Part shown: in pieces, positions 2,924-33,239 of the stretch | How the letters are laid out: every line of letters begins with the position of its first letter | How positions within the stretch are numbered: position 1 is the first letter of the stretch | Translations under genes and position numbers: made by a program | DNA from: Pavona decussata | Lineage: Eukaryota | Direction of reading: 5' to 3' | Assembly: GCA_977016875.1 (NCBI GenBank) | Contig: CDRNST010000037.1 | Coordinates: forward strand, 744,001 to 808,000 | Length of the DNA: 64,000 nt | The notes under the pieces: model-generated | Seen by the model: only the letters and a program-made list of their open reading frames with translations | Databases searched by the model: none | What the model was told of the DNA's origin: nothing

Positions 2924-5816
2924 CTAGTTTCGAACACTGGACCATTTTCTCCTGGTGGATACGTGTTTCCGTGGCTCAGTGGCTGGCTTTTCATTTTCAG
3001 CAGCTACTTCACCGACATCCTCAACTTTTGAATACTTAGCTGCATCGTACGCCGACATGTCCATCAGGTCCAGATACATCTGAAACATCAATAAGTGATG
3101 ATTTAGCCTTGATATTGAAATTTCTCTGAATCGCTCTGATTGGGCATTCTTTGTGTTAGAAATGAAGTTTCATATTTACTTTGTGATCTGAGGGCTCGAA
3201 TTCGCTATGCACGAAGCCTCGCTTTCATAACGAGGTTCAAAGCAACTCGGAAATTGCCTATTTTGTTTTTCCCATATTCATATGACAACTTTATTGCAAT
3301 TACTTGTATATTAATATGTCTTGATCATTCGGAGTAAGGAGTGGCGTATATTCACCTTAACCGTTCTCGAGAAACTGCCAAATTTTAGTAAGAAGAACTG
3401 TTAGATTGATTAGAAAACTACGTATCGGGTTTCATTTATTCCACACTGGCTCTCATGCCTTGTATGAAAATTGTTATTATTTCCTCCCTTACTCACAAAC
3501 CTTTTTTTCAATGTATGTTTGCATTCTCTGCCGAATGTTTTCAAAATGCGGGCGGAAGACTGGGTTCCAGCTCCAACATCTTTCCATCAAATGATACCTA
3601 AAAATAAATAGTTTGAATTCAGCAGCAGTTTGGTTGTAAGGTTTTCATTTCCTTCACAAATTTTTAAAGAACCATTAATCAATCTAATTACCAGGGGCTC
3701 TCGGCACTTCTTCTTACTTTCTGAAGCAAGAGAAGAGGGAACCTCGTTCCCAGGGTCTCTCCTCTTCACGTTTCGCCTGGGACGTAAAGAGGAGAGACCC
3801 TGGGAACGAGGTTGGAGAAGAGGAGAGGAAGAGAGTATTGATGGGCTGGTCATGTGGATCCCAGAGTATTGGAAATCACAAAAAATGATGCGAGGGAGGA
3901 GGCCGAGGACGGAAATTTGGAACAAACAAATGACTCTCCAAGGTTCGGGACAGAGCAGAAAAAAATGTGAATAAATCTACCCCAAAGAAAGATGTTGAGA
4001 GTGCAAATAAAAGTGCAATGTGTTGTAGCTTTGTAAATTACTTAGGGATGTTATGGGCTGTTTGTATGGAGGTTAGGGTAAGGGTCGTTTTTACCGAAAT
4101 AACCGGAATATCATTGAACCATTTGCTTCATCACACTCCGCAGGTACCATGCTACGCGGTTTATTTCTAACATTTGATTCCAAACGGAACAACTGTTTTC
4201 CTTATACAAATAGAAAGCACTCTAGAATTGCACTGTTCCATCTGACGAAAAATTCTCACCGGTTTTTTTCGTACGAATGGAAATCGTTCATTGTCTCTGA
4301 TTGAATCATGCATTTACAAATTGCCGGACAGTTGTAAACTGTGAAACTCACAGGGTGTCGTCGATGTGTGGTGGTTTTGGCATGCGGTAGCCATTTTGTA
4401 TTTCAATCATTGTTTTTCCTTCTGACCAGTTCGGATATGGGATGCCCCCTGTTGATTGTCAAAGACGAGTTACCTTCCTATTTTTTTTTAGCACTCTTGT
4501 CGTCATTCCTGTTCCTAACTTTGTGTCTTTCAAAGACACAAAACCGAACTACAAAACCCTACCTAGTAATACCAAATAGTATTGTTAAAGTTACTGCAAA
4601 ACAAACTTAGAAATAAATTTTATTGTTATATACCTAGACTTTTACTCAACAAAACGAGCACTGTGATCGGTTGAGTTTTGGTCACGTGCCCCTGATCAAA
4701 AACAAATGTTTCTCGACCGGAATACAATTCCACAGTTGTTGCCCTCTCAGTAAATTGCTCGTTTGCTTTGCTGTGATTGTTGAAGGGAAAGTCTAAATAT
4801 ATATTAAAGCACTTAATGTATGGTCCCTCGAAAAAATAGTTAGTTTTGTTTTCCCGAGAGTCCCAATGTTTTCCTCGACTTCGTCTCGGGAAACATCAGG
4901 GCTCTCCGGAAAACAAATTAAAACTGTTTCCCTCGGGACCATTCATTAAGTGTATATTATACTATTAATTAACATTTTCGCTTGTAAAATCATTAAAAGT
5001 TTTGAAGGCCAAAAAAGTATATAAATTGTTATGAAAAGGACTATTCAGTGATCTTCAGGGTGATATTAAAAATAAAATGCAGGCGTCGCTAAAATTATAC
5101 TGCGTTATTCCAAGTAGGAGTAGTTTTGGGATGAAACAGTGTACCTGAGTGTTCAATGAAAGCCATATTTGGCTAATTAGTAGGCCCTCGCGAGGATCTT
5201 GCAGTGTAGTTTAACTTTGCTGTAACTGATTAAGTCGGCATAACTATTTTAATTGGCCATACCAGTAGATGAATCAGTTTCACTACTATATTTTATTTTG
5301 CGATGTAAGTCTTTTTGTGATGCCTAATAAAAAAAAAAACCATCGCCTACCAATGGTGAATATCTCGAAGAGGACGATTCCATATGACCACCTGTGAAGT
5401 AGAAATGCATATGAGGGATTAAACCTTTTCCAGCGCTCCATTCTTATCTTCATACTTATAAAATCATCACTTTGTTTTAACTCTGGAGTGTGACCTTTGA
5501 ACAAGCATTTGGGCCGTACCGTTTGTCTTTGTTACTTTTTATTATACTTTTCAAGGTAGTTCTGTTAGTATGAGTTCAATATAAATCTTAATCTTTTTTT
5601 CCCATTTAGCTTTTGTAGCCTTATAGGGCAAGGCGGACACACCACTCCCAAATCTCCGTAAATCTGAGCGTAAATAAGCTATGACAATGAAACCTGAGGG
5701 GCTGCGATAGTACGACGTGTAACGTTTTGAGGACGCCAACAGGAACTCATGTTGACGTCATAAAAAGTTTAAAATCCGCCATCTTTAATTCTGTTGTTTT
5801 TGTTTGTTGTTGTTGT

Positions 5817-5869
<53 letters not shown>

Positions 5870-7581
5870 TATTCAAAAACTTCAAAAAGCACATAAATGA
5901 AGTGAAAGGAAATTAAAACTAATGAAATATCACGAAAATGTAGTAGTTACAATGAGGCTTGGGGCTGCTCTTCCTCTTGGTAGCTGAATTAATTGTAAGT
6001 CGGTCAGAAGCCCATGACCTATAGCCACTAACTCTACTACTTAGCCTTGGAGTCAACCCTTTCCAGAGAAGATTTATTTTTAGAACGGGTCTCAGGGGAC
6101 CTTTAGAAGCGCCCCCAATTGAAATACCCAATCAAAAAATAGCCGATGACAGTTCAATTGTCATACGTCATACCTTTACACGGGAAAAGCAGTCTAAAAA
6201 TAAATCTACTCTGGAAATGGTTCACTTGAGGCTTGATACAGATAGAGGCTCCTAATCATGGACTCCTGAAGTGGTTTATTTATATATATTAAATTTACAT
6301 ACACATCACTTTTGATGGATAGTTCTGCAGGATTTCCAAAGAGAATCTCAGGTGCTGTCCATTTAATTGGCATACAACCCTACAAGCAGGCAAGCAAGCA
6401 AGCAGCATCTAAGTTATTTTATATACCTGGACTGAAGGTTATAAATAACCTAATTGAAAGTCTTTTCAGGCGTGAATCAACGTTTCATAACTACAACGTT
6501 TTCCATTTGTATTTCCAGTGAAGCGTGGCAATAATTCTTTCAGATATAAAAAGACCGCTTCCATGAAGATAACAGTCTGTTTTTGAAAAATCGGCAGGTT
6601 ATTCAGTGTCATGTAGCAACAGTTCAGACCGCAGTACTGTAAATTTGAAACCTCTACTTTCAAATCGTGTTCAAACATAAGGCAAACAAATTATTTGCTT
6701 TAAGTCCAGTGTACCTTTTTTGCGTTGCCATGTCCATATTTGAAGTTCTGATATGCTAGACCAAAATCTGTCACCTTGCATACAAAGTTTCGATCCAAGA
6801 GGATGTTTCGTGCTGCTAAATCACGGTGGACTATCTACAAAAACAAATATCATAACAAACGAAATTAATTTTGGGAAGAATTTTAAATATTTCTTATATA
6901 TATTTCTCAAGTATATTAAATTTTTATAGAATCTCTAAATGCCCGTTTAAACGGTTTCTACATTTGCCCAACATTCGTCCAACAAAAGTTGAACGGATGT
7001 TGGAAATGTTGGATAAACGGAGTGTTGAGACGGTTTCAACGCCGTTCAACATTTTCATAAACAAAGTTAAAATAAACATACCCCTCTGGATCCAAGAAAT
7101 ACCATTCCAGTAGCAATTTGTTTTGCAAATGAGACCAGATCATATGTTGTCAGCTCTAAGATACCACCCTCTCCAAAATGATACTTGTCAACAATTCCTC
7201 GGCTTTTTCTCAGATAACCAAGCAAATCTCCAGACGCCAGGTACTCCATGATGAGAATTGGGTGAACTGTGAGCAGAAAAGCAGTAGTTAAGGACGGTGC
7301 CTACTATTACAGAGGTATTTTTGCGCAGTTTATTACTATGCGGGAAAAGCAGATCCAAGCAAGGACTATTGGAATCCAAAAAGAAAATTGGGGGGAAACC
7401 ACGCATTTTTAAGAGATAATTAAGAAACAATAATTCTAAAAAGTGATAAAATACAAATCAATGTATGGCATTTTTTTTTATCAAATTGAAACTTTATTAT
7501 CAGTCTGAAAAATGCATCGTCCCCCCCAATTTTCTTTCTAAATACCAAGAGCACTGGCTAAGTTCTACTTTCCCCGCATAG

Positions 7582-7614
<33 letters not shown>

Positions 7615-8823
7615 GGCACCACCCATAGGAAACCCGAGTATCTCGAGATGCGCAGAACGTATGCGCAGTAACAAAAGTAGGCCTCTTCCTTAAATGTTAT
7701 TATACATTGGTGCCCTTACTTGTGTACTTATGAGTTCAAACCGGCACTGCCGGCCTTCAAGACAAAATGCTCGGATAGTGCGGGGTTATGCTGGCCCAGA
7801 ATGCTATTCAAAGCTGGCATGGCACTGTTTAGTTCTTATCTTTTAGTAATGGGCTCCACTGAGTGACTTAAGAACTATTGGAAAGGCTCCGTGGAAGTGG
7901 GCATCTGAGTATACCCCCTAAAAATGCACTCTCGGTCAATAGTCTCATTGCTAACACTTTGGCAAATCTCTGTGAATCGGCTGAGATATATAACAAAAAT
8001 AAAACAGAAAGAAACAAAGAAAGAAGCAAGAACCATTAAAGAAATGCATCTCCTTACGTTGTGTTGTAACACATCCAATAAAATTGATAATGTTTGGCTG
8101 AGGATTTTCTCCAAACATTTTTCCCAACTCGATCTCTCTCATAAGCGCTTTTCTTCCATCCTCTCCAGCAGTGGCTACGAAATAGAAAATAACAGAGTTA
8201 ACTCGGATAGGTAAGATGGCCAATACGTCGCATAGGATGCACCCCAAACAAAAACTGTACCATTATTTTCTCTTTTGTGATGTGTTCGGCGGTGTTGCTT
8301 TGTATTGCGTGCGGTGTGCTGTTGTGTTGTGCTGACGTGTTCTTCTGTATCAACGGAAACTCCAAAAGCAAACACGGTGTACATAGATAATATGAAGGAG
8401 AGTTAGTTCAACAGTCGGATTGTTAAAGGGACTCTAAAAACGTCTGAAGTTCAGGTTAAAAACCAAGAGTAATGCACAGATATCACTAACCACTAACTAA
8501 AAAGGAAAATTAACACACCTGGACAGCACAAGTTAATTAATCGTTAACAATTTTTGTAAGCTTTCTAAATTAAATGAACCTTACGTCATCGATATTACAA
8601 TTAGTTTAGAAATTAAACAGAGCGGTTCTTACGTGTAAAGCACTTCGCTGCAACAATACGTTTTCCGAATCCTCCAGTTGGTTGACTCAAAGTTGCTCGC
8701 CAAACTACTCCATATGCCCCAGAACCTATGACCTCTCGCAGTGCTATACGGTCACGTGAAATCTCCCATTCATCCACTTCACAGTTCCACTCATCCATCT
8801 CGTATCCTTGGTTTTCATTATGC
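2924..8823 (-). CDS. RTK cytoplasmic region: tyrosine kinase domain and C-tail (9 exons)
   Basis: GSGAYG loop, VAAK, LMREIE (alphaC), [27 protein letters not shown] and VTDFGL (6834-6715), [13 protein letters not shown] (6379-6303), [26 protein letters not shown] (4448-4352), LMERCW..PVFRPHF (3597-3501), tail MYLDLMD...SSVRN*. FGFR/RET-like type. Confidence 0.93.
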
Positions 8824-11800
8824 CTTGATGATGTTCAAACAGAAAAGTTCGTACCTTCATCAAAATACTCTGCTGACATTATATGCCTTAATCAGTTGCA
8901 TATTTTATTTTCATCATTCGGATATAGATTAAATTGAATGCATCTGTAGAAACGAAAAATCACTGAAGTGATTTCAAAAGGTTTTCCATGGTCAAGAAAA
9001 GTGCTATTAAACCAATATGAGGAAGGAATTGATTAGTAGTCAAAACAATCATCTTTACTTTTATTATCAGCTTAGCTTGGTACTCCAAACATCTGTCTTT
9101 TGTCCGCCGCGCGTACCCTGTCTGTTCAATGAGCCCGCACGCGGTCGGTTTCATATTCAATGGGCAAATGGAAGAAACCTTTTCATCTGATTCCTTTTCT
9201 TTCAAAACCTCTTCCCTGATAACAAGTGCGTTAATACCACCTACTAAAGGTAATTTCAATAGATAATTGAAAGTCATTTCACTTACTTGATCTCCCGCTT
9301 GGCCTTGCCTGTGTTCCCCGGAATGAAGTGAATCAAATAAAACTAATCAGATACTTGGAAAGGGAGGGTTTGATTTGTCACGAAAAGAAAAACAGCATTT
9401 ATAGGACAGTCCACACTACGGGTGCCTTCTATTCGTCAGAACTGGCCGGCCAGACTAGTCGGTCCGTATATAGATTGTCAGACCAATTTGAAGGATTGTA
9501 GATTCTTCGAATTCTTCAAAATGACATATTCTGGGAGAAGCGAACGCCATTTTGAAGCAATTTAATAAAGTAGTTAATAAACTGTCCTTTAAATGGGTGC
9601 ATTTCGTTTGAGAAATAATCTAACTGGCTGGCCAGGTCTGACAAATGGAAAGCGCCCAACGACTATCGAGATTATTTAATTAAAAACAACCACGGCCACA
9701 TTGGTGGGAGAGTATATTGGAAAGGGATTCGTCTGGCCACTTTGGAGTCCATGTTGATCACTAGACCGAGGAATTGATGGTCAATGTCAATGTACATGTT
9801 TGTTTCCATAATATAAATGCTGGCAGTGCGTAAAACGTGTTTTTCGTTTGGTATTGAACTTGTGATGACTTGCCTTCCTTTCTAGCATTAAATTACATCT
9901 TACTATTGATAATAATGATATTGTAAATTTTAGCTTACATTTTCTGCACATTGCAAATATTTCCTTGTCAATTTTTATTGTAAATGTTTATTGTAAATGT
10001 TAAGTCTATAAAATTTTAACACATTGTAATTAATATAATATGCAAAAATGTGTCTTTTTTGGGGGGGGCTCGGGCTTTCACGGTGGCTTTCGCTGGTTAT
10101 TGCAGCTCTGAAGAGTGGTTTCCATACCTTTCTTTCGACGTTTGCAAATGTACCAGGTGAGTAATGTAAAAACTATCACAGCCAACAAAGGACCAACAAT
10201 GAAGTACCATCCCAGTGTCGTTCCACTCAGGGAAGGAGTATCTATATCTGTAAAGACAAATGACTTGAATTGCAAATGAAATTCAAAAATGACTATTCAC
10301 TTGTCTTCTTAACCAATTTTGATTATATCGAATCTGGTGCTAGCTTTAAGAGCTTGTGGATGAAAACGTACAGTAGGGTAGAGTGTAGAGATGTCTTTTT
10401 CTGAGACACTATAAAAGCTGATCTCAACTTCCCCCACCCCATAGAGCTCGTTACATATCTTTGGTTCCCCAGGGATGCATTGAGAAACTGCCAATGGACT
10501 CAGCGTGTCCAAGGATCTCCTCTGAGGCAACTTTGGTGCCTCCCAAGCGACCACAGGCGAAGCGAAGAAAAAAGCCCTTATAGGTGGGTAGAGAAGGCGG
10601 CTGATAAAAGTACAAATTTACTTGAGTTAGGTCGCTATTTCATAGACGAGTGTGTATAACAATATTCTGACCATCCCATCCTAATGCTTATAATCATCAC
10701 AAAAATCCAGACGAAGAAAGATTTCAACAAACACTGGTTACTGCCCATGTGAACTTTCCGTGGAAATCGCACAATCTATGGACACTTCCACGGATAAAAG
10801 TTCCTGTTGTCATAAAAGCGAAAAAATTATCACATAGATCTTCAAACTCTGGGAAAAGGTTTCCTCCTTACCATTTTCAGATTGAATTACTGGATGTTAA
10901 AAATATTTCATAGCACAAGGAAATTATACATCTGTCTGCCACAATTTACTTTCTAATGAGTCTTTAGTGCAGTGGGATTTAGGGACCTTTCCAGCTTAAA
11001 ATTTCACTTCTTAAGACCTAATTAAACTAAAATGACGAGGAGTACCAGATTTTGCCCTTCCGAAAACGCGCGTTTGAAAAGCTAGTCGATTACTGTTCGC
11101 TCTTGTATGTTAAGCGCCTTACATTGTTTGATTTCCACGTGGTGCTCCTGCTCAACTCTATAAACTTATTAATTACTTGATCATAAATTTAAGTAAAATC
11201 AGGTGATGTAACTGAAAGGGTTACACGTTGCTTCACAACTATAAAGTTAACTTCTCTGAATACCTGCATCGCAGCCATACAGCTCTATCCTCATTCCAAT
11301 ATGAGTCTCCCATTGTACTGGTAGTATCCTGACGTAACGTGTTTTTATTGGTGGGTTTATTCCGTTGTACTCAATATGGTCACTATCTGTATTTCCATCA
11401 AACACCTACATAGAAAATTTCCGATCATTTGCTTATGATCATGACCATGTCTATGNNNNNNNNNNNNNNNNNNNNNNNNNNNNNNNNNNNNNNNNNNNNN
11501 NNNNNNNNNNNNNNNNNNNNNNNNNNNNNNNNNNNNNNNNNNNNNNNNNNNNNNNNNNNNNNNNNNNNNNNNNNNNNNNNNNNNNNNNNNNNNNNNNNNN
11601 NNNNNNNNNNNNNNNNNNNNNNNNNNNNNNNNNNNNNNNNNNNNNNNNNNNNNNNNNNNNNNNNNNNNNNNNNNNNNNNNNNNNNNNNNNNNNNNNNATT
11701 ACGTTGCTAGTGGGAACCAAGCCTTATTAAGCCCACCCTAGAGGAAAGACGATGAGAAGTTGGTTAAGGCTTACAGTAGTTCTATATACAAGACTGGCTA

Positions 11801-23800: not shown

Positions 23801-26800
23801 TAAACAGGCAAACAAAAATGACTTCAACGATTAAAATCGTTCAATAAAGGAGCACTTACCTGAACATCTATCCTCGCAATAGAACGCACTGAATCCGGTG
23901 TAAGAGCCATTCTTATCTGATCTGAATATTACAAACATTTGGTTGGAGGAGGAGAAGATTCCTTCTTTAGATGGAGGGTTACCTCCGTAGAATACTCCCA
24001 AAACCTCCCCAGTGCTATTCTTGCCATCATACACGTATAAAGCGTCCGTGTTATTCTCATTTTGCAAACTGAATTTTGTGAACTTTAACTGAATTTGATG
24101 TCCTGGACTGACCGTGATCCTCCAGGAGCAATACTGGCCATCTGGGTACTTTCCTGGATAGTTTGGTGAATGGAAACTGCCCATGACTCCTGTTAGACTT
24201 TTCTTGCATCCTGCAAAAATACTAATCCTGAACATCCCTCTCTCTCTCTTCTAATATATAAGAAGAATTATAGTACCCTGTAATCCAAAAACTTAATAAG
24301 TCATTCCTAAACTTAATTGTTTCTCAATGTTGTCATCTATTGATTCAAAGTTGTAAGAATACCATGAACGTAGGCCATGTACGTCCAAAAGAGATTATTA
24401 CTACAGGAAGGCAGGGCAGGTACAGTGGTAAAAACAATCACGTCCCACCAATGTGGCCTGAGTTTGATTCCCGTTGGTGACGCTGTATGTGGGTTTTGCT
24501 TCCTCCAAAAAATCAACATTCCCAATTTGACTCTTGAAGGACACCCAGAATTAACGCCGAGTAAGCTTGGTGCTGCTTTCCCTTAATACTACAAGTGTAG
24601 AAGTCTGTGGCAGCTTGTTTGTGAAAAGAGAAACAAAAACGTTCAATAGGATTTCAAACATAAGTAAGGTGGGTATACTATACATAGTTTTCCTTTGCCG
24701 CGGATCATGATGGGTGGTTCCAAGAAAGTGTTTCAATAAAGGTTAGTGTGTGAAGAGCTGCATGTGCACAGACGCAGCGATTACAGAATAGTCACTCACC
24801 ATGATAGTAACAGTAATGAATCTTGTGATCACTGATTCCTGCCCCGTATGGATATGAACCTCCTTTGCCGTCCCTATTACCCGTATCCTCATTATCAAAC
24901 CGAATCCACTCCACACTATTTACCGCCCACTTCACCTGCTGGCATACAGCTGAATCATAAGCCAACAAGAAAAATGGTTTCAGGGTTGGAAGAGAGATGG
25001 GATCCTTTTTATCTCCGTCTGTTCTGCAACAAAACTCAATCCTTGTGTCCATGTTATATACGCCATCAGGAAGTGTCCCCGACATGCTGTTCTGATTGAA
25101 CTTCTCTTCGTCGTCCCATTTGATAAATCCTGATTTCAAATATGTGGGACAGGAGCCACCTTTCTTGTAAATGCAGTATTTACCTGGCAGGTCAGAGATT
25201 AAAAATATGTTAATTGTGTTTTCGTTTCTTATTCTCTTGCTATGATCGATGATAGTCCATGAATATAAATATGGCATTACGCTACCTCGTGGCCAATGTC
25301 TTCGTTTCACGTCTAGCGATGAATCTGTTTTCACACAGAATGATCGGACAATGTCATTCTTGTTCACCGTTGCGTTGAGGTGAAGCTTGTTGGATTTGAA
25401 GTTGTTGGGATTGGTATCTTCCGTGTCCTGGTATCTCCGTCCTGTCAGCCACTGAAAGCCATCAGCATAGGGGCACCCGGATGCTGCTTGTGGTATCCCG
25501 TATGAGCCCTCTGGCCAATAAACGGATTCTGCAAAAGTAATACCAAGTGCTTTTGAGTCAAAACCATGTTGCTTAAACGCGCCTCAAGAAAGTACTGCGC
25601 TTATGACCAAGGTTAAAACCCACTTCAAGACTGCCTTCCCTTTAGCAATGATCACTGCATGTACTTTTAGCGTCACTTTAGAAGTGTGGCGTAATACTCC
25701 CAACACCTCGACAGCCATTAGGCAATTAAATGATCTACCTGTAATATTGTACCACATCAAATTCATGTCATCTCCCAATAAACAATTTGTGATAGATAAT
25801 GCAAAACTACCGTCACGAAATGACTATTGCACAAGCAGAAGACATGAAAGTTTCCCCGAAGTATAAATTGTGATTACGTTCTCAATTCTGGCTTGCATCT
25901 CATAATACGAATATGAAATTGAAAAATGAAAATTTGTGTTTTCCTGTTTCAACCATCTCGACTTTCTTACAGTAACTGAGCTGCTAAAAATATTACTGCT
26001 ACTTAACTAAAGCAAGGAAATACGCAAGTCTTTCCCTAAAATTGTGCTGAGTTTTCAGAGACATTTAATGAGGTTGTAGCTTCGAGCCTGTTGGTGAAAT
26101 CCAAGTCATCGCTTTTCCAAAAAAAATTAGGCCCACAATTAGGGTTTCAGAAATCTTTTGGTTTTACCAGGGTAGAAAGTGATTGTGGGCAATGTAAAAA
26201 TGGGAACCATGGCAAAGCAGCGTCGTCTTCCTTCTTTTTTCTTTCCTTTCACCTTCCTTACTCATAAAACATAAACAGACAATATCCTATTTTCAAGGAC
26301 CATGCAACTCTGAATAATGTATATTACTTAACTAAACCCCTTACACAAGCAATCTACAGCGTTAGAGGAAGTACGTCTATCTGATTTAAACGATACAAAC
26401 ATGAAGATTGACAAGGAGTACATTTCTTCTTTTGAAGGAGCATGACATGGGCAGAATTCTCCAACGCCAACCACGCCCCACCCCAAAGGAGAAATTCTCT
26501 CCATTATTTACAAGTGTGTGTTATCTTCGCTTTTTAAACCAAAAGTAGCTACGTGCCAGTAACTACCACCAAAACTCATTTAATGCCCCATCAAAAGGCA
26601 AACAACGAGAGTGACTTTAACGATTAAAATCGTTCAAAAAAGGAACATTTACCTGAACATCTACCCACGCAGTAGAACGCACTGAATCCGGTGTAAGAGC
26701 CACTCTTATCTGATATGAATATTACAAACATTTGGTTGGAAGAAGAGAAGATTCCCTCTTTTGATGGAGGGTTACCTCCGTAGAATACTCTCAACAACTC

Positions 26801-29800
26801 CCCAGTGCTATTCTTGCCATCATACACGTATAAAGCGTCCGTGTTATTCTCATTTTGCAAACTGAAGTCTGGGAACGTTAAGTGAATTGGTTGCGTTTGG
26901 TTGACCGTGATCGTCCAGGAGCAGTACTGGCCATCTGGATACTTTCCTGGATAGTTTGGTGAATGGAAACTTCCCATGACTCCTGTTAGACTTTTGTTGC
27001 ATCCTAGAAAAAGACATACTATGCACATCTCTCGCTTATTAATATATGAGACGAATTCCAATGCAATCGTATCCAAAGGACCTTAACTGGTCAATCTTAA
27101 ACTTAATCTTGCTCGATGTTACAGTGGAAGTTCTGGTAAGCGGACACCCTGGGTACGCGGAAAAGGTGTCCTTTACTAATGCTGGCCGCTTACAACAATG
27201 GTTCTCGTACGCGGCCACTAGAGATGTGAAGGATATATGGCCAATTACAGGAGCTTGGCCAGTAAATATTGGCGATGCAAAAACGTACCACCGTATTAAA
27301 TGATTTTTGTTGTTGTTGTTGTTGTTGTTGTTGTTATTGTTTTATTGCCTTATTTCATTGCCGCGATAATGGCGATAACTGTAGTCAATGCACTGTAAAA
27401 TCATTGTGACGAACAGCGATGTGAGTTTGATTGATAAAAATAAGATTCAGAGGCTAATGGGATTTACTTACGGGTGTCCGCTTACGGGAGCTTAAAATAA
27501 ATGAAAAAGTCTAAATTGTAACCTCTGTAAGTGTCCGCGTCCGCTTACAGGAATGTCCGTGTAAATACAGAGTTTCTATTAGAGTTCAAACGCGGTGTTG
27601 TGAAGGCGGTTTTAAGTAAGGCTGTCCGCTTACGCGAGTGTCCGTTATGAGGGCTTCCACTGTATTATCTATTTGTTTGAATTCCTACGCATACGTAGAA
27701 CATACGGCAAGTATGTTGAGTAATCAGGGAAGGCGCAGAGGTGAGAGCGCTCGCTTCCCACGAATGTGGCCCCCGTTCCAGGGCTTACTTCAGATTCTCT
27801 TTTTCTTCCTCCAAAAAAAACCAACTCTCACAAAGTCCAATCCTACTCCTGTTGGCCACCATAATAAACCTGGACTTAACTTGGTGCTACCATCTCTTAA
27901 TACTCTTATTTTAGTACAAAGTTTAGAAGTCTGAAGTAGCCTCCCTTAGAAAACAGAAACAAAATAAGTTGTGAATAACTTTAAACATAAGTAACGAGGA
28001 TATAATAGAAACAATTTTCCTTTGCAGTCAATCGCCATGGAAGGTTACAAATATGTGTTTCGCTATAGAATGTTATTGTTTGAAGAGTTGGGCAGACGCA
28101 GCGATCACAAAAAAGTCACTCACCCTGATAGTAACAGTAATGAATCGTGTGATCCCTGATTCCTGCACCATATGGATATGAGCCTCCTTTGCCGTCCCTA
28201 TTACCCGTATCCTCATTGTCAAACCGAATCCACTCAACACTAACTACCGCCCACTTCACCTGCTGGCATACAGCTGAATCATAAGCCAACAAGAAAAATG
28301 GTTTCAGGGTTGGAAGAGAGATGGGATCCTTTTTATCTCCGTCTGTTCTACAGCAATATTCAATCCTTGTGTCCATGTTATATTCGCCATCAGGAACTGT
28401 TCCCGACATGCTGTTCTGATTGAATTTGTTTTCGTCGTCCCATTTGATAAATCCTGATGTCAAATATGTGGGACAGGAGCCACCTTTCTTGTAAATGCAG
28501 TATTTACCTGTCAGGTCAGAGATTAAAAATATGTTACTTGTGCTTAAGTTTCTTATTGTCTCGCTATGATGATAGTCCATGAATATAAATAGGGCATTAC
28601 ACTACCTCGTGGCCAGTGTCCTCGTTTTCCGTCTAGCGATAAATCTGTTTTCACGCAGAATGATCGGTCAATGTCATTCTTGTTCACCCTAGCGCTTAGG
28701 TGGAGCTTGTTGGATTTGTAGTTGTTGGGATTGGTATCTTCCGTGTCCTGGTATCTCCGTCCTGTCAGCCACTGAAAGCCATCAGCATAGGGACACCCGG
28801 ATGCTGCTTGTGGTACCCCGTATGAGCCCTCTGGCCAATAAACGGATTCTGCTAAAGTAATGCCAGGTGGTTTTTAGTCAAAACCATGCTGTTTTGTCTG
28901 CACGACGAAAATACACCTTGAAAGAGAACTGTAGTTATGACCAAGCTTACAAGCCACTCTAACACTGCTTCACCTTCCTCGATGATCACTGCGTTTACTT
29001 TTAGGGTCCGTTAAAAAACGTGGCGCAATACCCCTAACACTTCGACAGCCGTTAGGCAGTTTTTTGCCCTATCCGTGGTATTGTATCACATCAAATTCAT
29101 GTGATCTGCCAATAAACAATCTGAGATAGACGATGCAAAACTACCGTCACGAATGACCATTGCACAACCAGACGCCTTGAACGTTTCCATGAAATACAAT
29201 GCGCGATCAGGATCTCAATTATGACTTGCATGTCATAATAAGAATATGACAATAAAAATCAATTCAAGCTTTCGTTTCTTGTGTCGACCATCTTACAGTA
29301 ACTTAGCTCCTACAAATATTATTGCCTCTTGACTAAAGCAAGGATTGAGCAAGTCTTTCCAAAAAATTGTGCTTAGTTTGCACAGACATTTAATGAGGTC
29401 TTAGCTTCGAGCCTGTTGGTGAAATCCAAAGTATGGCTTTTCAAAAAAAAGAAATTAGGCCCCCAATTAGGGTTTAAGAAATCTTTTCGTTTTACCAGGG
29501 TAGAAAGTGGGTGTGGGCAATGTAAAGATAGGGACATTGACGAAGCGGTGTTGTCGTCCTTTTATTTTTCTTTGCTGTCACCACCCTTACTCATAAAACA
29601 TAAACAGACAATATCCTATTTTTAAGGACCATGCAACCCTGGATAATGTATATTACTCAACTAAACCCCTTACACAAGCAATCTGCAGCATTAGATGGAG
29701 CATTACTATTTGATATCAATTTTACAAACATGAGGATTGACAAGGAGTAGATTTCTCCTTTTGGTAGGGCATAACATGGGCAGAATTCTCCAACGCCAAC

Positions 29801-32800
29801 CACGCCCCACACCAAACGAGAAAGTCTCTCCGTTATATTATACATAGTGTGTGTGTTATTCTCGCTTTTTAAACCAAAAGCTATAATTTAACGTGCTAGT
29901 AACTAGCATCAAAACTCATATAATGCCCCATCAAAAGGCAAACAACGAAAATGACTTCAACTATTAAAATCGTTAATTAAAGGAGCACTTACCTTGACAT
30001 CTACCCACGCAGTACAACGCACTGAATCCGGTGTAAGAGCCACTCTTATCTGATATGAATATTACAAACATTTGGTTGGAGGAGGAGAAGATTCCTTCTT
30101 TAGATGGAGGGTTACCTCCGTAGAATACTCCCAACAACTCCCCAGTGCTATTCTTGCCATCATACACGTATAAAGCGTCCGTGTTATTCTCATTTTGCAA
30201 ACTGAAGTCTGGGAACGTTAAGTGAATTGGCTGTGTTCGGTTGACCGTGATCGTCCAGGAGCAGTACTGGCCATCTGGGTACTTTCCTGGATAGTTTGGT
30301 GAATGGAAACTGCCCATGACTCCTGTTAGACGTTTGTTGCATCCTAGAAAAAGACATACTATGCACATCTCTCGCTTATTAATATATAAAACGAATTCCA
30401 ATGCAATCGTATCCAAAGGACCTTAACTGGTCAGTCTTAAACTTAATCTTGCTCGTTGTTACAGTGGAAGTTCTGGTAAGCGGACGTCTTCGGGATGCGG
30501 AAAAGGTGTCCGTTACTGGAGCTGGCCGCTTACAACAACGGTTCTCGTACGCGGCCACTAGAGATGTAAAATATAGATGGCCACTTACGGCAGCTTGCCC
30601 AGTAAATATTGAAGATGCAAAAACATACCATCGTATTAAATTATTTTTGTTTTTGTTTTTGTTGTTATTCTTTTATTGCCTTATCCAATGCCGCGATAAT
30701 GGCGATAACTGTAATGAATGTACTGTAAAATCATGATGACGAACAGCGATGTGAGGTTCATTGACTAAAGCAAGATTCAGAAGCTAATGGGATTTCCTTT
30801 CGGGTGTCCCCTTACGAGAGCTTAAAATAAAAGGAAAAGTTTAAATCGTAACCTCTTTAAGTGTCCGCGGCCGCTTACGGGAATGTCCGTGTAAATACAG
30901 TTTCTACGGGAGTTCAAAGGGGGTGTTGTGTAGGCGGTCTTACGTAAAGCTATCCGCTTACGAGAGTGTCCGTTATGAGGGCTTCCACTGTATTATCTAT
31001 TGGTTTGAATTCCTACGCATGCGTAGAACATACGGCAAGTATGTTCAATAAATAGGGAAGGCGCAGAGGTGAGAGCACTCGCTTCCCACCAATGTGGCCC
31101 TGGTTCGAGGGCTTTCTTCGGATTTTCTGTTTTTTCTTCCTCCACAAAAACCAACACTCCCAAATACCAATTCGACTCTTGTGGGCCACCATAATTAACC
31201 TGGACTTATCTTGGTGCTACCATCTCTTAATACTATTATTTTAGTACAAAGTTTAGACGTCTGCAGTAGCTTGCCTAAGAAAACAGAAACAAATTATTTT
31301 TAAAAACTTTAACTGACATAAGTAACGCGGGTCTTATAGAAATAATTTTCCTTTGCAGCGAATCGCCATGGAAGGTTACAAATATGCGTTTCACTATCGA
31401 ATGTTATTGTGTGAAGAGTTGCGCAGACGCAGCGATCACAGAAAAGTCACTCACCCTGATAGTAACAGTAATGAATCGTGTGATCCCTGATTCCTGCACC
31501 ATATGGATATGAGCCTCCTTTTCCGTCCCTATTACCCGTATCCTCATTGTCAAACCGAATCCACTCAACACTAACTACCGCCCACTTCACCTGCTGGCAT
31601 ACAGCTGAATCATAAGCCAACAAGAAAAATGGTTTCAGGGTTGGAAGAGAGATGGGATCCTTTTTATCTCCGTCTGTTCTGCAACAAAACTCAATCTTTG
31701 TGTCTTTGTTATATACGCCATCAGGAAGTGTCCCCCACATGCTGTTCCGATTTTGGGTGTTCTCGTCGTCCCATTTGATAAATCCTGATGTCAAATTTGT
31801 GGGACAGGAGCCACCTTTCTTGTAAATGCAGTATTTACCTGGTCAGGTCAGAGATTAAAAATATGTTACTTGTGCTTTAGTTTCTTATTGTCTCGCTATG
31901 ATGATAGTCCATGAATATAAATATGGCATTACACTACCTCGTGGCCAGTGTCCTCGTTTCCCGTCTAGCGATGAACCTGTTTTCACGCAGAATGATCGGT
32001 CAATGTCATTCTTTTTCACCGTTGCGTTAAGGTGAAGCTTGTTGGATTTGTAGTTGTTGGGATGGGTATTTTCCGTGTCCTGGTATCTCCGTCCTGTCAG
32101 CCACTGAAAGCCATCAGCATAGGGGCACCCGGATGCTGCTTGCGGTACACCGTATGAGCCCTCTGGCCAATAAACGGATTCTGCAAAATTAATGCCAGGT
32201 TGTTTTCAGTGAAAAACATGTTGCTTTGTCTACACGACGAAAACATGGGTCGAGAAAGAAGCAGACTTATGACCAAGCGTACAAGCTACTGCAAGACTGC
32301 CTCACCTTCAAAAATGATCACTGCATGCACTTTTAGGTTAAGTTAAAAAACGTGGCGCACTACCCCTAGCACCTAGTTTTTTGCCCTACTGTGGTAAGGT
32401 ATTAATAAAAACAATATAATTTGCTGGCAAAATGGTCTGCCACAGGATGGCACATTTGTAAATTCAGTCCACTAGTAGGAAATTCGACGACAGTTGTTCA
32501 GTAACCCCCATTGATCCTGGCCTTTAATTGAGTTCCCAGTCCCCGAGAGGACATATTCTCTTCGTATCTTCAAGAACATTAAAGGTATCATATGACAGTG
32601 AAGCTTTGCGGGTATATGGAATATCCAAACTGTTTCCTTTGAGATCCGCAAAATTGCATGATGACGAAATATGGATTAGGAAATACGTTATTTACTCGCC
32701 ACCAAGTTTCCGCAACCTCGAATTTTGCGATTTTTCAAACATCTTAGAAATTTATTAGGCGTCCAAGTTAACTTCAAAATAATCAAAAGCAAAGACGAAA

Positions 32801-33239
32801 CGTTACCGTTTTGAAAATTGAAGGATTTATTGAGAGTTTTTCATAGAAAGGTACTGACTTCTTGCCATGGAAAACAGCAGGTCGCGTGTGTTTGAAGAAT
32901 TTTTGCCAGACAAGAAAAGTCAATCACATAATTAGCTACCATCAACCCAGATGGTATGAAAGACATATGCTCTGAGTCAAGACAGTAGCTACTTTGATAA
33001 CGTACATTTCAGAACAAGAATAGCTTGCCAGGCACAGTAGGAATGCTTTCCCTTGCAGGCGATGTAGCCGTCAGTGAGTGTCGGCGAAGGCGCGTACGTA
33101 GATTGCTGGCCTAGCTTAGCGCTTCCGGTGCGCTGACTCTGGAACAGAACTTTATTATTCCTACTTCATACATACCTGATGATGTTGATTCGAAAAAACA
33201 CACAACGGTTAGCAGGCCGAACGTTCGCCACAGTAGCAT
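2924..33239 (-). CDS. Receptor tyrosine kinase, ~2028 aa: SP-(ApeC-CUB)x3-(F5/8C)x4-TM-TK (29 coding exons)
   Basis: Exons in transcript order: 33239-33176; 32180-31938; 31838-31455; 30343-29993; 28848-28606; 28507-28124; 27003-26653; 25528-25286; 25183-24800; 24210-23860; 23357-23032; 22236-22098; 21928-21603; 20623-20485; 19602-19277; 13629-13488; 12965-12640; 11405-11264; 10247-10128; 9308-9287; 8823-8633; 8174-8058; 7266-7082; 6834-6715; 6379-6303; 5391-5351; 4448-4352; 3597-3501; 3079-2924. All introns are GT-AG, phases are compatible, the sum is 6087 nt, and no internal stop was seen. Confidence 0.85.
3740..3814. repeat. Short palindromic MITE-like hairpin
   Basis: AACCTCGTTCCCAGGGTCTCTCCTCTT ... 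AAGAGGAGAGACCCTGGGAACGAGGTT inverted arms. Confidence 0.75.
4800..4960. repeat. Palindromic MITE-like element
   Basis: CACTTAATG..TGGTCCCTCG.. pairs with ..CCCTCGGGACCA..CATTAAGTG; long imperfect inverted repeat. Confidence 0.65.
5792..5868. repeat. (GTT)n microsatellite
   Basis: Direct GTT repeats; similar tracts at ~27308-27340 and ~46060-46100. Confidence 0.9.
7292..7689. mobile_element. TTAA-target MITE, same family as 2377..2769
   Basis: TTAA at 7288-7291 and 7690-7693; colinear with the 2377 copy; about 20 nt from the acceptor of kinase exon 7266-7082. Confidence 0.85.
9287..9308 (-). CDS. 22-nt juxtamembrane micro-exon of the RTK ((G)KAKREI(K))
   Basis: cacag|GCAAGGCCAAGCGGGAGATCAA|gtaagt; converts phase 1 (TM exon) to the phase 2 needed by exon 8823-8633. 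Confidence 0.7.
10128..10247 (-). CDS. RTK transmembrane exon
   Basis: [40 protein letters not shown]: hydrophobic span followed by a basic stop-transfer cluster; phase 1-1. Confidence 0.9.
11264..23357 (-). CDS. RTK ectodomain: four F5/8 type C (discoidin) domains, each split into 326-nt plus 139/142-nt exons
   Basis: [19 protein letters not shown]....ARL...W......QWLQVDL...VTGVATQG...WV.KY.LQYSDDG + VFDGN.D......[13 protein letters not shown]...IGMR.ELYGC. Confidence 0.93.
13635..18054 (+). mobile_element. Decayed Ty3/Gypsy LTR retrotransposon lacking its 5' LTR
   Basis: gag from 13725 with zinc knuckle [21 protein letters not shown]; RT ([16 protein letters not shown]); RNase H (VDAS, TDHQPL); integrase (H..HQG, ITDNG.QF); many stops and frameshifts. 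PPT AAAGGAGAAAGG 17826-17837 is followed by a 3' LTR TGTTA...TAACA at 17838-18054. Confidence 0.92.
18074..18530 (-). mobile_element. 5'-truncated L2/CR1-like LINE 3' end with (TAAA)n tail
   Basis: C-terminal [26 protein letters not shown]; (ATTT)n at 18074-18100; absent from the paralogous intron near 11865. Confidence 0.75.
21125..21355. mobile_element. Penelope-like element terminal (pLTR) fragment
   Basis: GACTGACGTTTCGAC...AAGTCATCTTCAGAGTC motif typical of Penelope termini; absent from the paralogous intron (~22770). Confidence 0.6.
21175..21217 (-). ncRNA. Minimal type I hammerhead ribozyme (Penelope-associated)
   Basis: Minus strand reads GACT-CTGAAGA-T-GAC(ttccgctcaggtg)GTC-GAAA-CGTC-AGTC: core boxes CUGANGA and GAAA, stem I GACU/AGUC, stem II GAC/GUC, vestigial stem III with a GUC cleavage triplet. 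Confidence 0.72.
23600..23770 (-). pseudogene. Decayed CUB pseudo-exon (paralogous relics at ~26330-26510 and ~29660-29845)
   Basis: Reads HVYDGES / [25 protein letters not shown] across a frameshift, versus intact [32 protein letters not shown]. Confidence 0.55.
23860..24210 (-). CDS. RTK CUB domain 3 (single phase 1-1 exon, 351 nt)
   Basis: C...[27 protein letters not shown]...I.LKF..F.L....D.LYVYDG....LGVF.G....[13 protein letters not shown]....GFSAFY. Confidence 0.93.
24410..24585 (+). mobile_element. tRNA-derived SINE relic (paralogues at 27727..27895 and 31055..31225)
   Basis: A-box-like GGCGCAG.GGTGAGAGC, CCCACCAATGTGGCC, B-box-like GGTTCGA in the 31055 copy; same position in all three ApeC-CUB units. 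Confidence 0.65.
24800..25528 (-). CDS. RTK ApeC (apextrin C-terminal) domain 3 (exons 25528-25286, 25183-24800)
   Basis: WPEGSYG.P...SGCP..QDTED..FCVK..WPRG|[47 protein letters not shown]; eight Cys and three DxED-type motifs, the ApeC signature. Confidence 0.88.
26653..27003 (-). CDS. RTK CUB domain 2
   Basis: 351-nt phase 1-1 exon inside ORF 26624..27076; CUB motifs as above. Confidence 0.93.
27122..27662. mobile_element. TA-target Tc1/mariner-type MITE (paralogue at 30462..30990)
   Basis: TA|CAGTGGAAG...CTTCCACTG|TA with internal GTGTCCGCTTACG repeats. Confidence 0.8.
28124..28848 (-). CDS. RTK ApeC domain 2 (exons 28848-28606, 28507-28124)
   Basis: 243 + 384 nt exons with the same ApeC signature; 98-nt GT-AG intron. 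Confidence 0.88.
29993..30343 (-). CDS. RTK CUB domain 1
   Basis: 351-nt phase 1-1 exon inside ORF 29973..30416. Confidence 0.93.
30462..30990. mobile_element. TA-target Tc1/mariner-type MITE
   Basis: TA|CAGTGGAAG...CTTCCACTG|TA; same flanks as the 27122 copy (co-duplicated). Confidence 0.8.
31455..32180 (-). CDS. RTK ApeC domain 1 (exons 32180-31938, 31838-31455)
   Basis: [38 protein letters not shown]...FCVK...WPRG|[12 protein letters not shown]...YCYYQ; 99-nt intron containing an in-frame TGA. Confidence 0.88.
33176..33239 (-). CDS. RTK signal peptide exon
   Basis: [21 protein letters not shown] + G|gtatgt (phase 1); acceptor ttgcag at 33262-33263 just upstream implies an earlier non-coding exon. 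Confidence 0.8.

Follow-up and report, generated by a model that had tools for sequence, protein, structure and literature searches.

The 64,000-nucleotide (nt) stretch of DNA analysed here, called the window below, comes from the stony coral Pavona decussata (assembly GCA_977016875.1, contig CDRNST010000037.1, positions 744,001 to 808,000; C37:744001-808000 in our searches). On its minus strand, from 33239 to 2924, lies what is very probably one expressed gene for a type-I membrane receptor tyrosine kinase (RTK) of about 2035 amino acids (aa), continuous from ectodomain through kinase. A putative signal peptide comes first, then three units in which ApeC, an invertebrate module that binds sugars and bacteria, is paired with CUB, and after these four F5/8C domains, a transmembrane (TM) exon, a 22-nt juxtamembrane micro-exon and a tyrosine kinase. 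It is an RTK with a new ectodomain combination, and two more ApeC-kinase loci are found in the same genome. The best overall explanation, to which we give a probability of roughly 0.55, is that this is a single ApeC-CUB-F5/8C RTK gene whose kinase is active and whose receptor chains are clustered by a glycan-bearing microbial or symbiont ligand.

The DNA of the window is about 40% GC and eukaryotic, and the domain pieces are collinear across the minus-strand stop-to-stop frames from 33239 to 2924. RNA runs in which exons of the window occur carry either the label coral metagenome or one shared coded organism label, and the closest proteins are those of Acropora, Montipora and further stony corals. 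Pfam scans and the other searches were run on single exons, and split codons were handled apart. Frame-keeping GT/AG pairs were listed and splice sites were then picked by RNA joints, the limits of Pfam matches and homology between repeat units. The resulting model, checked exon by exon, has 29 exons, all 29 with GT..AG introns, consistent phases and no internal stops (Table 1). The coding sequence of 6108 nt begins with an ATG at 33239 and ends with a stop at 2926-2924, which are the same bounds that a preliminary description of this DNA, made from the letters alone, had proposed. The continuous, phase-consistent spliced reading frame that it described was recovered, as was its domain order, by exon-by-exon Pfam matches and by motif reading, with the signal peptide as a putative element. 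The description is refined in two points, the added micro-exon and the intronic position of an assembly gap. The ectodomain modules are all flanked by phase-1 introns: the ApeC and CUB exons are 1>1 and each F5/8C domain is a pair of 1>0 and 0>1. Judged by these intron phases, this is the classic exon-shuffling layout.

All three ApeC domains (PF16977) are encoded by two exons split by an intron of 98-102 nt, and they match the Pfam profile with E values from 1e-25 to 1e-76 (about 1e-25 for the first exons and about 1e-52 for the second). In ApeC-3 the 102-nt intron is open in frame, so the open reading frame (ORF) track gives a single 263-aa ORF. The preliminary description had named the lack of an ApeC profile match as grounds for dropping its reading; the matches are strong. 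Every ApeC has eight cysteines, and DxE[DN] motifs occur three times in ApeC-1 and ApeC-2 and twice in ApeC-3, in the forms DTE[ND], DDEN (DDEE in unit 3) and DNED. Eight cysteines with DXED-type motifs are the hallmarks of ApeC (PMC8361754). The summed scores are far above the 26.5-bit cut-off and the domain has the expected length of about 200 aa, which places the product among the ApeC-containing proteins. The three CUB domains are encoded by one exon each and are full length (E about 1e-26), and each of the four F5_F8_type_C domains is encoded by two exons that match profile positions 1-82 and 86-127.

The kinase domain, PK_Tyr_Ser-Thr (PF07714), is spread over eight exons, K1 to K8. Seven of these match the profile in order, at 2-40, 74-122, 123-152, 166-188, 188-203, 199-232 and 234-257, for an overall coverage of 2-257, and K2 fills 41-73 without a Pfam match of its own. 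Every catalytic motif is intact and can be read directly, and with a tyrosine kinase and a single TM span the protein has the features of an RTK. On the strength of these motifs it is likely that the kinase is active. In single-exon searches of the PDB the nearest solved chains to K3 were CSF1R, KIT, RET and FGFR1, and K4 matched Eph, EGFR and MET chains. An RTK subfamily was not assigned from single exons, as K3 and K4 disagree. No DDR chain was among the matches of K3 and K4, which is a weak test given short exons and single-exon queries. By these matches the kinase is not DDR-like.

RNA evidence joins the ectodomain. RNA contigs from four runs of four studies were aligned to 19200-25199 of the window, and CT..AC joints on the plus strand, equal to GT..AG on the minus strand, were found in three runs of three studies (X1, X3 and X8). 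Six predicted junctions were matched exactly by spliced contigs: 24800>24210, from ApeC-3 to CUB-3 (X1, X3 and X8); 23860>23357, from CUB-3 to F5/8C-1 (X1 and X3, two studies); 23032>22236; 22077>21928 (X1, X3 and X8); 21603>20623; and 20485>19602. The joined chain runs from the second exon of ApeC-3 through CUB-3 and both exons of F5/8C-1 and F5/8C-2 to the first exon of F5/8C-3, and then into a second exon of the 3b/4b type. The copy-specific variants 3b and 4b both occur in RNA, in each case joined by splicing to an exon of the a type. Several contigs show just 0-3 differences from the window and some are about 99% identical, whereas paralogues are 60-90% alike in the same exons; the contigs therefore derive from the window locus. 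Since CUB-3 is spliced to F5/8C-1 in RNA, the ApeC-CUB and F5/8C blocks share one transcript, which answers, at this junction, the concern in the preliminary description that the ApeC-CUB block could be a gene apart from the F5/8C-TM-kinase block.

The probable link from the F5/8C block through the TM exon to the kinase on one transcript is supported by conserved order, matching phases and the conserved micro-exon. The TM donor AAG/GTATG that follows the KRRKK residues is kept in all three paralogues in which the scan located the TM exon. This donor leaves phase 1 and K1 begins in phase 2 at its well-formed acceptor, a mismatch that is resolved by the 22-nt micro-exon. No indel interrupts the micro-exon pattern in four paralogues from this genome or in five loci from two other assemblies, and the juxtamembrane region comes to roughly 45 residues. 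The acceptor of K1 is placed by the motif [DN]EE.GYEM, which is conserved in homologous ORFs upstream of an alternative phase-1 site in K1. Three other ways of making the link were considered and set aside. A direct splice from the TM exon to K1 (10128>8806) is in frame but uses a poor acceptor, and homologues conserve protein upstream of it, hence the micro-exon model is favoured; an open path from the TM exon to K1 exists either way. An ORF at 9346-8963 is conserved as DNA, but in each of the four paralogues its frame is interrupted by stops and 1-nt indels. Pairing donor 10082 with acceptor 8823 (phase 2) works in the window copy only and is not conserved. When spliced TM-K1 fragments were searched for with the K1 ORF, all 33 of 33 matches were unspliced genomic ORFs. 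The intron that directly follows the micro-exon (9126-9286, minus strand) has 60-83% identical columns in five paralogues in gap-free alignment bins. It is as conserved as the coding exons, yet it is not open in the paralogues, and it may be a control element for the splicing of the micro-exon.

The same region bears on the possibility that the locus makes two products, a short-tail ApeC-CUB-F5/8C membrane protein that ends after the TM span and a kinase that is started separately, with the full fusion rare or absent. Read-through of the TM donor reaches a stop after 16 more codons, which makes a kinase-less short-tail isoform possible; many coral ApeC-CUB proteins are kinase-less membrane proteins; and K1 has an in-frame ATG at its start (MDEW...). 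The RNA joints cover ApeC-3 to F5/8C-3, and the path from F5/8C-4 through the TM exon and micro-exon to K1 comes from comparison. However, the phases of the TM exon, micro-exon and K1 are compatible (1>1, 1>2 and 2>1) and their splice sites are conserved in paralogues and in loci of two assemblies. A 22-nt exon would serve only as a link, distant homologues conserve as protein the part of K1 that precedes the ATG, and the intervening introns offer just 0.8 kb and 0.46 kb, without a recognisable first exon of a kinase. Two separate products are thus improbable, and a single transcript that reaches the kinase is preferred.

The repeats of the ectodomain arose, by the divergence between their copies, through duplication within the gene. 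The ApeC-CUB units share 84-92% of their DNA including introns (dS 0.10-0.15), with ApeC dN/dS of 0.25-0.52. F5/8C-1 and F5/8C-2 are 76-80% identical in aa sequence (dS about 0.11-0.18, dN/dS 0.66-0.91), F5/8C-3 and F5/8C-4 are 94% identical (dS 0.03-0.05, dN/dS 0.53-0.80), and either of the first two shares 66-67% with F5/8C-3 (dS 0.8-0.9, dN/dS 0.22-0.26). The dN/dS below 1 for every ApeC exon pair is consistent with purifying selection after duplication and argues against decay.

A gap of Ns in the assembly lies in the intron between the two exons of F5/8C-4 and, being intronic, breaks no frame; the acceptor of the second exon and the 51 nt before it are read sequence outside the gap. Both flanks of the gap are collinear with the F5/8C-3 unit and in the same orientation (11044-11410 against 13268-13634, 94.6%; 11881-13263 against 18558-19900, 90.2%). 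Units that are 90-95% identical represent a genuine and fairly recent duplication and not an assembly copy. The intron between the two exons of F5/8C-3 measures 5647 nt, against 1234 nt in the duplicate unit, because a Ty3/gypsy-type retroelement has been inserted in it. A second retroelement, of the BEL/Pao type (Peptidase_A17, DUF1759 and aspartyl protease), is found at 34200-39400 on the minus strand, about 1 kb or less upstream of exon 1. With this element so near, the promoter region would be short or partly transposon-derived.

These features raise the question of whether the locus is a decaying or mis-assembled copy, that is, a pseudogene or a chimera from a mis-join at the N gap or from collapsed repeats, with a fortuitous long ORF. 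The gap falls within a recently duplicated unit, two retroelements lie in and beside the gene, and the K1 acceptor preferred by the paralogues is mutated here from GAAG to GAAC. Against this, a replacement AG 9 nt downstream preserves the phase of K1, 29 exons are open with canonical splice sites, and the duplicated units fall short of the 100% identity of assembly copies. In addition, 3b and 4b both appear in spliced transcripts and dN/dS is mostly below 1. Decay or mis-assembly is very improbable, and an intact gene remains the preferred account.

The gene is not a one-off but, from the loci mapped in this genome and in other assemblies, a member of an expanded RTK family that shuffles its ectodomains. 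Genome-wide exon and ApeC searches covered the 602-Mb assembly. At 76% identity or more, 18 relatives of the K3 exon were located, so that the kinase family has at least 18 paralogues. Three of 18 kinase loci have an ApeC on the same strand no more than 15 kb upstream: the window gene and one locus each on contigs C241 and C232. A further C232 locus has CUB and F5/8C domains before the kinase and is without ApeC (Table 1). Between paralogues the kinase exons are 80-97% identical and the ectodomain exons 56-87%. In a second assembly (ENA ERZ26692694, one 1.48-Mb contig) two loci have the order ApeC-CUB-TM-kinase and one has ApeC-CUB-F5/8C-TM-kinase, one of them complete within 15.5 kb. Their DNA identity of 76-80% to the loci compared here means that they are not copies of those five loci. 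In a third assembly (ENA ERZ25071802, locus L021:91-2732) the same type of kinase has three immunoglobulin-domain ORFs upstream. This member, by its domain content, hints at an FGFR/VEGFR-like ancestor, and with the family picture it agrees with descent of the kinase from the FGFR/PDGFR/VEGFR group, a group that has been dated to cnidarians (PMC8662651). Three more loci (L013, L014 and L017), seen with 10-kb flanks, show F5/8C-TM-kinase, a kinase alone or ApeC-CUB repeats alone and are neutral on the fusion.

Other arrangements were observed around these families. More distant tyrosine-kinase exons (41-62% identity to K3) form large tandem arrays on contigs C198, C7, C351, C217, C282, C100 and C109, with up to about a dozen kinase exons per contig, and the coral's tyrosine kinome seems to have expanded strongly. 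ApeC exons that share the two-exon structure of the ApeC domains in the RTK form dense one-strand clusters, probably tandem ApeC-CUB genes, at C133:24000-217000 and C105:293000-357000; the module in the RTK may stem from such clusters. At one ApeC-CUB-TM-kinase locus of the second assembly (L018:15147-19555, ERZ26692694 ctg14849), Pox_VLTF3 and Pox_A32 ORFs beside an 871-aa ORF look like a giant-virus-like insertion. They lie 5-9 kb downstream of K1, past the last mapped kinase exon. Elsewhere in the window, a von Willebrand factor A domain ORF at 58014-58460 on the minus strand (Pfam E 4e-12) is probably an exon of another gene.

Table 1. Exons of the RTK gene in transcript order, other features of the window, and related loci in the same genome (coordinates are window positions unless a contig is named)
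Feature	Coordinates	Strand	Remarks
Exon 1, start codon and signal-peptide-like N-terminus	33176..33239	-	donor CAG/GTATGT; phase out 1
ApeC-1 first exon	31938..32180	-	Pfam E 7e-25, profile 1-79; phase 1>1
ApeC-1 second exon	31455..31838	-	Pfam E 2.4e-52, profile 77-208; phase 1>1
CUB-1	29993..30343	-	Pfam E 1.4e-26, profile 1-110; phase 1>1
ApeC-2 first exon	28606..28848	-	Pfam E 3.7e-25
ApeC-2 second exon	28124..28507	-	Pfam E 3.2e-51
CUB-2	26653..27003	-	Pfam E 1.5e-25
ApeC-3 first exon	25286..25528	-	Pfam E 2.5e-76 for the read-through ORF, 2 stretches
ApeC-3 second exon	24800..25183	-	RNA joint to CUB-3 (X1, X3, X8)
CUB-3	23860..24210	-	Pfam E 1.2e-27; RNA joints both sides
F5/8C-1 first exon	23032..23357	-	Pfam E 4.9e-16; phase 1>0; RNA joint from CUB-3
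F5/8C-1 second exon	22077..22236	-	Pfam E 3.3e-07, profile 86-127; phase 0>1; RNA joints
F5/8C-2 first exon	21603..21928	-	Pfam E 1.2e-16; RNA joints
F5/8C-2 second exon	20485..20623	-	Pfam E 7.6e-08; RNA joints
F5/8C-3 first exon (3a)	19277..19602	-	Pfam E 2.2e-16; RNA contig from 19275 into 3b/4b-type exon
F5/8C-3 second exon (3b)	13488..13629	-	Pfam E 2.4e-07; RNA contig variant, one mismatch
F5/8C-4 first exon (4a)	12640..12965	-	Pfam E 2.2e-16; 94% aa identity to 3a, dS 0.045
F5/8C-4 second exon (4b)	11264..11405	-	Pfam E 2.4e-07; RNA contig variant exact over first 28 nt
TM exon	10128..10247	-	23-residue hydrophobic stretch, then KRRKK; phase 1>1
22-nt juxtamembrane micro-exon	9287..9308	-	phase 1>2; conserved AG/22 nt/GTAAGT
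K1	8633..8823	-	GSGAYG loop, VAAK lysine; Pfam profile 2-40; phase 2>1
K2 (alpha-C helix region)	8058..8174	-	66-80% identical in paralogues
K3	7082..7266	-	Pfam E 1.1e-07, profile 74-122
K4	6715..6834	-	HRDLAARN catalytic loop and DFG; Pfam E 4.8e-11, profile 123-152
K5	6303..6379	-	PIKWTAPE
K6	5351..5391	-	Pfam match in kinase profile order
K7	4352..4448	-	92-97% identical in paralogues
K8 (kinase domain end)	3501..3597	-	Pfam profile 234-257
Last exon, C-terminal tail and stop	2924..3079	-	tail conserved in paralogues, 60-78% identity
N gap in assembly	11456..11697	.	within F5/8C-4a/4b intron (4a ends 12640, 4b starts 11405)
Degenerate Ty3/gypsy-type retroelement	13700..17900 (approximate)	+	in F5/8C-3 intron, antisense to gene; RVT_1, RT_RNaseH and rve in separate broken ORFs
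Related locus, (CUB-F5/8C-)ApeC-CUB-F5/8C-TM-kinase	C241:99-123 kb		exon mapping
Related locus, CUB-ApeC-CUB-F5/8C-TM-kinase	C232:235-258 kb		exon mapping
Related locus, CUB-F5/8C x3-TM-kinase, without ApeC	C232:345-360 kb		exon mapping

The combination of ApeC and kinase was looked for among known proteins. No kinase (PF07714) or F5/8C (PF00754) family was found in 79 annotated ApeC-CUB relatives of 299-2940 aa, collected in two word-index searches. Stony corals, among them Acropora, Montipora, Porites, Stylophora, Pocillopora, Oculina and Desmophyllum, account for most of the 79, and the remainder are CUB proteins from other animals that are less closely related. Pfam scans of 20 out of the 150 ApeC representatives nearest in a library of 1.84 billion proteins likewise showed no kinase or F5/8C; these 20 are ApeC, ApeC-CUB(-TM), MACPF-ApeC or astacin-ApeC proteins. 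An ApeC RTK was not found in the accessible literature on ApeC and on coral tyrosine kinases, the survey of Li et al. 2021 (Mol Phylogenet Evol 155:107009) lying beyond this scope. The earlier remark that no RTK family with an ApeC ectodomain has been characterised agrees with these 79 and 20 relatives and with that literature. It may simply be that long, repeat-rich loci are present in public annotation as split gene models.

It is proposed that the lectin-like ectodomain would bind a multivalent, probably glycan-bearing ligand, and that binding would cluster or re-orient the receptor chains. Clustered kinase domains would then phosphorylate each other on activation-loop tyrosines, and phosphotyrosine signalling would start as in other RTKs, which are ligand-controlled oligomers (PMC2680970). 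By analogy, the leading though tentative candidate for the ligand class is a microbial or symbiont surface carbohydrate, for example peptidoglycan. A peptidoglycan-type ligand is favoured because in amphioxus and molluscs ApeC binds this polymer and also causes bacteria to agglutinate (PMC8361754, PMC9585378). ApeC proteins also mark an immune cell type in Stylophora (PMC8162421). A broader and rather doubtful proposal is that phase-1 exon insertion brought ApeC-CUB modules, which serve elsewhere as peptidoglycan binders in secreted proteins, onto an FGFR/PDGFR-type kinase, which would have given corals a family of pattern-recognition RTKs that read bacterial or symbiont contact as tyrosine phosphorylation.

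A ligand of the coral itself, in the matrix or on a cell surface, is almost as probable as a microbial carbohydrate. The gene and the kinase mechanism would be the same, and a neuropilin/DCBLD-like CUB-F5/8C core on an FGFR/PDGFR/VEGFR-type kinase would sense a secreted growth factor, the matrix or a neighbouring cell in adhesion, allorecognition or settlement, with ApeC as an extra adhesive module. The core plan of the family is CUB-F5/8C(n)-TM-kinase, in which ApeC is found within 15 kb in only three of 18 close kinase paralogues, and the L021 member carries immunoglobulin domains instead. The closeness of K3 to CSF1R, KIT, RET and FGFR also fits this possibility, as does the first apextrin, an extracellular-matrix protein for which a role in cell adhesion was proposed (PMC8361754). 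However, all the ApeC domains tested so far bind peptidoglycan or microbes (PMC8361754, PMC9585378). The tripled ApeC-CUB unit suggests selection for avidity to a repetitive surface, and tandem arrays in which the ectodomain changes fast while the kinase is conserved typify families of recognition receptors.

Several points weigh against a glycan-clustered RTK encoded by a single gene, in addition to the extent of the RNA joints and the read-through of the TM donor described above. ApeC proteins have no orthologues between phyla (PMC9585378) and binding is known from amphioxus and molluscs, so that the function is not simply transferable to a coral. CUB with F5/8C is also the ectodomain plan of neuropilins and DCBLD, which bind protein ligands, and most members of the kinase family are without ApeC. 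The N-terminus looks like a signal peptide by its hydrophobic core and has the status of a prediction. The count of four F5/8C domains is provisional, as the gap could hide more copies. Constraint is relaxed in some pairs of repeats (dN/dS 1.7 for CUB-1 against CUB-3 and 0.9 for the first exons of F5/8C-1 and F5/8C-2).

The locus may bear on an open question, how corals discriminate between pathogens on one side and beneficial microbes and algal symbionts on the other. To our knowledge the coral candidates (TLRs, NLRs, lectins and scavenger receptors) are mostly without direct catalytic output. If the ligand proposal is true, a module that binds bacterial cell walls is wired to a tyrosine kinase, which would be a simple and testable signalling route. 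Phospho-specific assays, kinase inhibitors, chimeric receptors and other standard RTK tools could be applied to such a receptor. It would also be an animal counterpart of the lectin and LysM receptor kinases of plants, and cnidarian immunity and symbiosis would gain a signalling route not described before. Should either the link to the kinase or the proposal on the ligand fail, an uncharacterised lineage-specific RTK remains, mainly of interest for kinome evolution. The locus is in any case a clean example of domain shuffling, with phase-1 modules, duplication within the gene and presence or absence of modules among paralogues with nearly identical kinases.

The architecture resembles several known systems in part. 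DDR1 and DDR2 are likewise single-pass RTKs with an F5/8C (discoidin) domain in the ectodomain. However, the DDRs have one discoidin and one discoidin-like domain, a very long juxtamembrane region and no CUB or ApeC, whereas the window gene has four F5/8C, three CUB and three ApeC domains. DDR has been placed as an innovation of bilaterians (PMC8662651), and with the different ectodomain and the non-DDR kinase matches the likeness would be convergent. Neuropilins and DCBLD/ESDN likewise have CUB and F5/8C domains followed by one TM helix, but they have neither kinase nor ApeC, and neuropilins signal via a separate VEGFR or plexin partner. No MAM or LCCL match was found in exon-by-exon Pfam scans of the window gene, which departs in this from the neuropilin/DCBLD plan.

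The nearest precedent for the idea, as it is cited in PMC2680970, is a hydrozoan RTK with repeated lectin-type ectodomain modules. It is set alongside the window gene by description, and its CTLD fold differs from the ApeC and F5/8C domains found here. Plant lectin and LysM receptor kinases follow the same logic, in which a carbohydrate-binding ectodomain on a cytoplasmic kinase serves the perception of microbes or symbionts (PMC7758398). Their ectodomain folds are unrelated and they use a Ser/Thr (RLK/Pelle) kinase in contrast to the animal tyrosine kinase; the comparison is one of analogy only. The ApeC-containing proteins (ACPs), which include the apextrins, amphioxus ACP1, ACP2, ACP3 and ACP5, mollusc CgACP1 and BgACP1 and the ApeC-CUB membrane proteins of corals, share with the window gene a full-length ApeC that has DxED-type motifs and eight cysteines. 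Its pairing of ApeC with CUB recurs as the same module in coral proteins such as Acropora palmata LOC141866665, which is 64% identical to ApeC-3, and in amphioxus ACP5. In the literature ApeC proteins are described as secreted or membrane-bound, with more than 20 architectures. The known ACPs are secreted, or are held in the membrane without an enzymatic tail, whereas the window gene carries a kinase.

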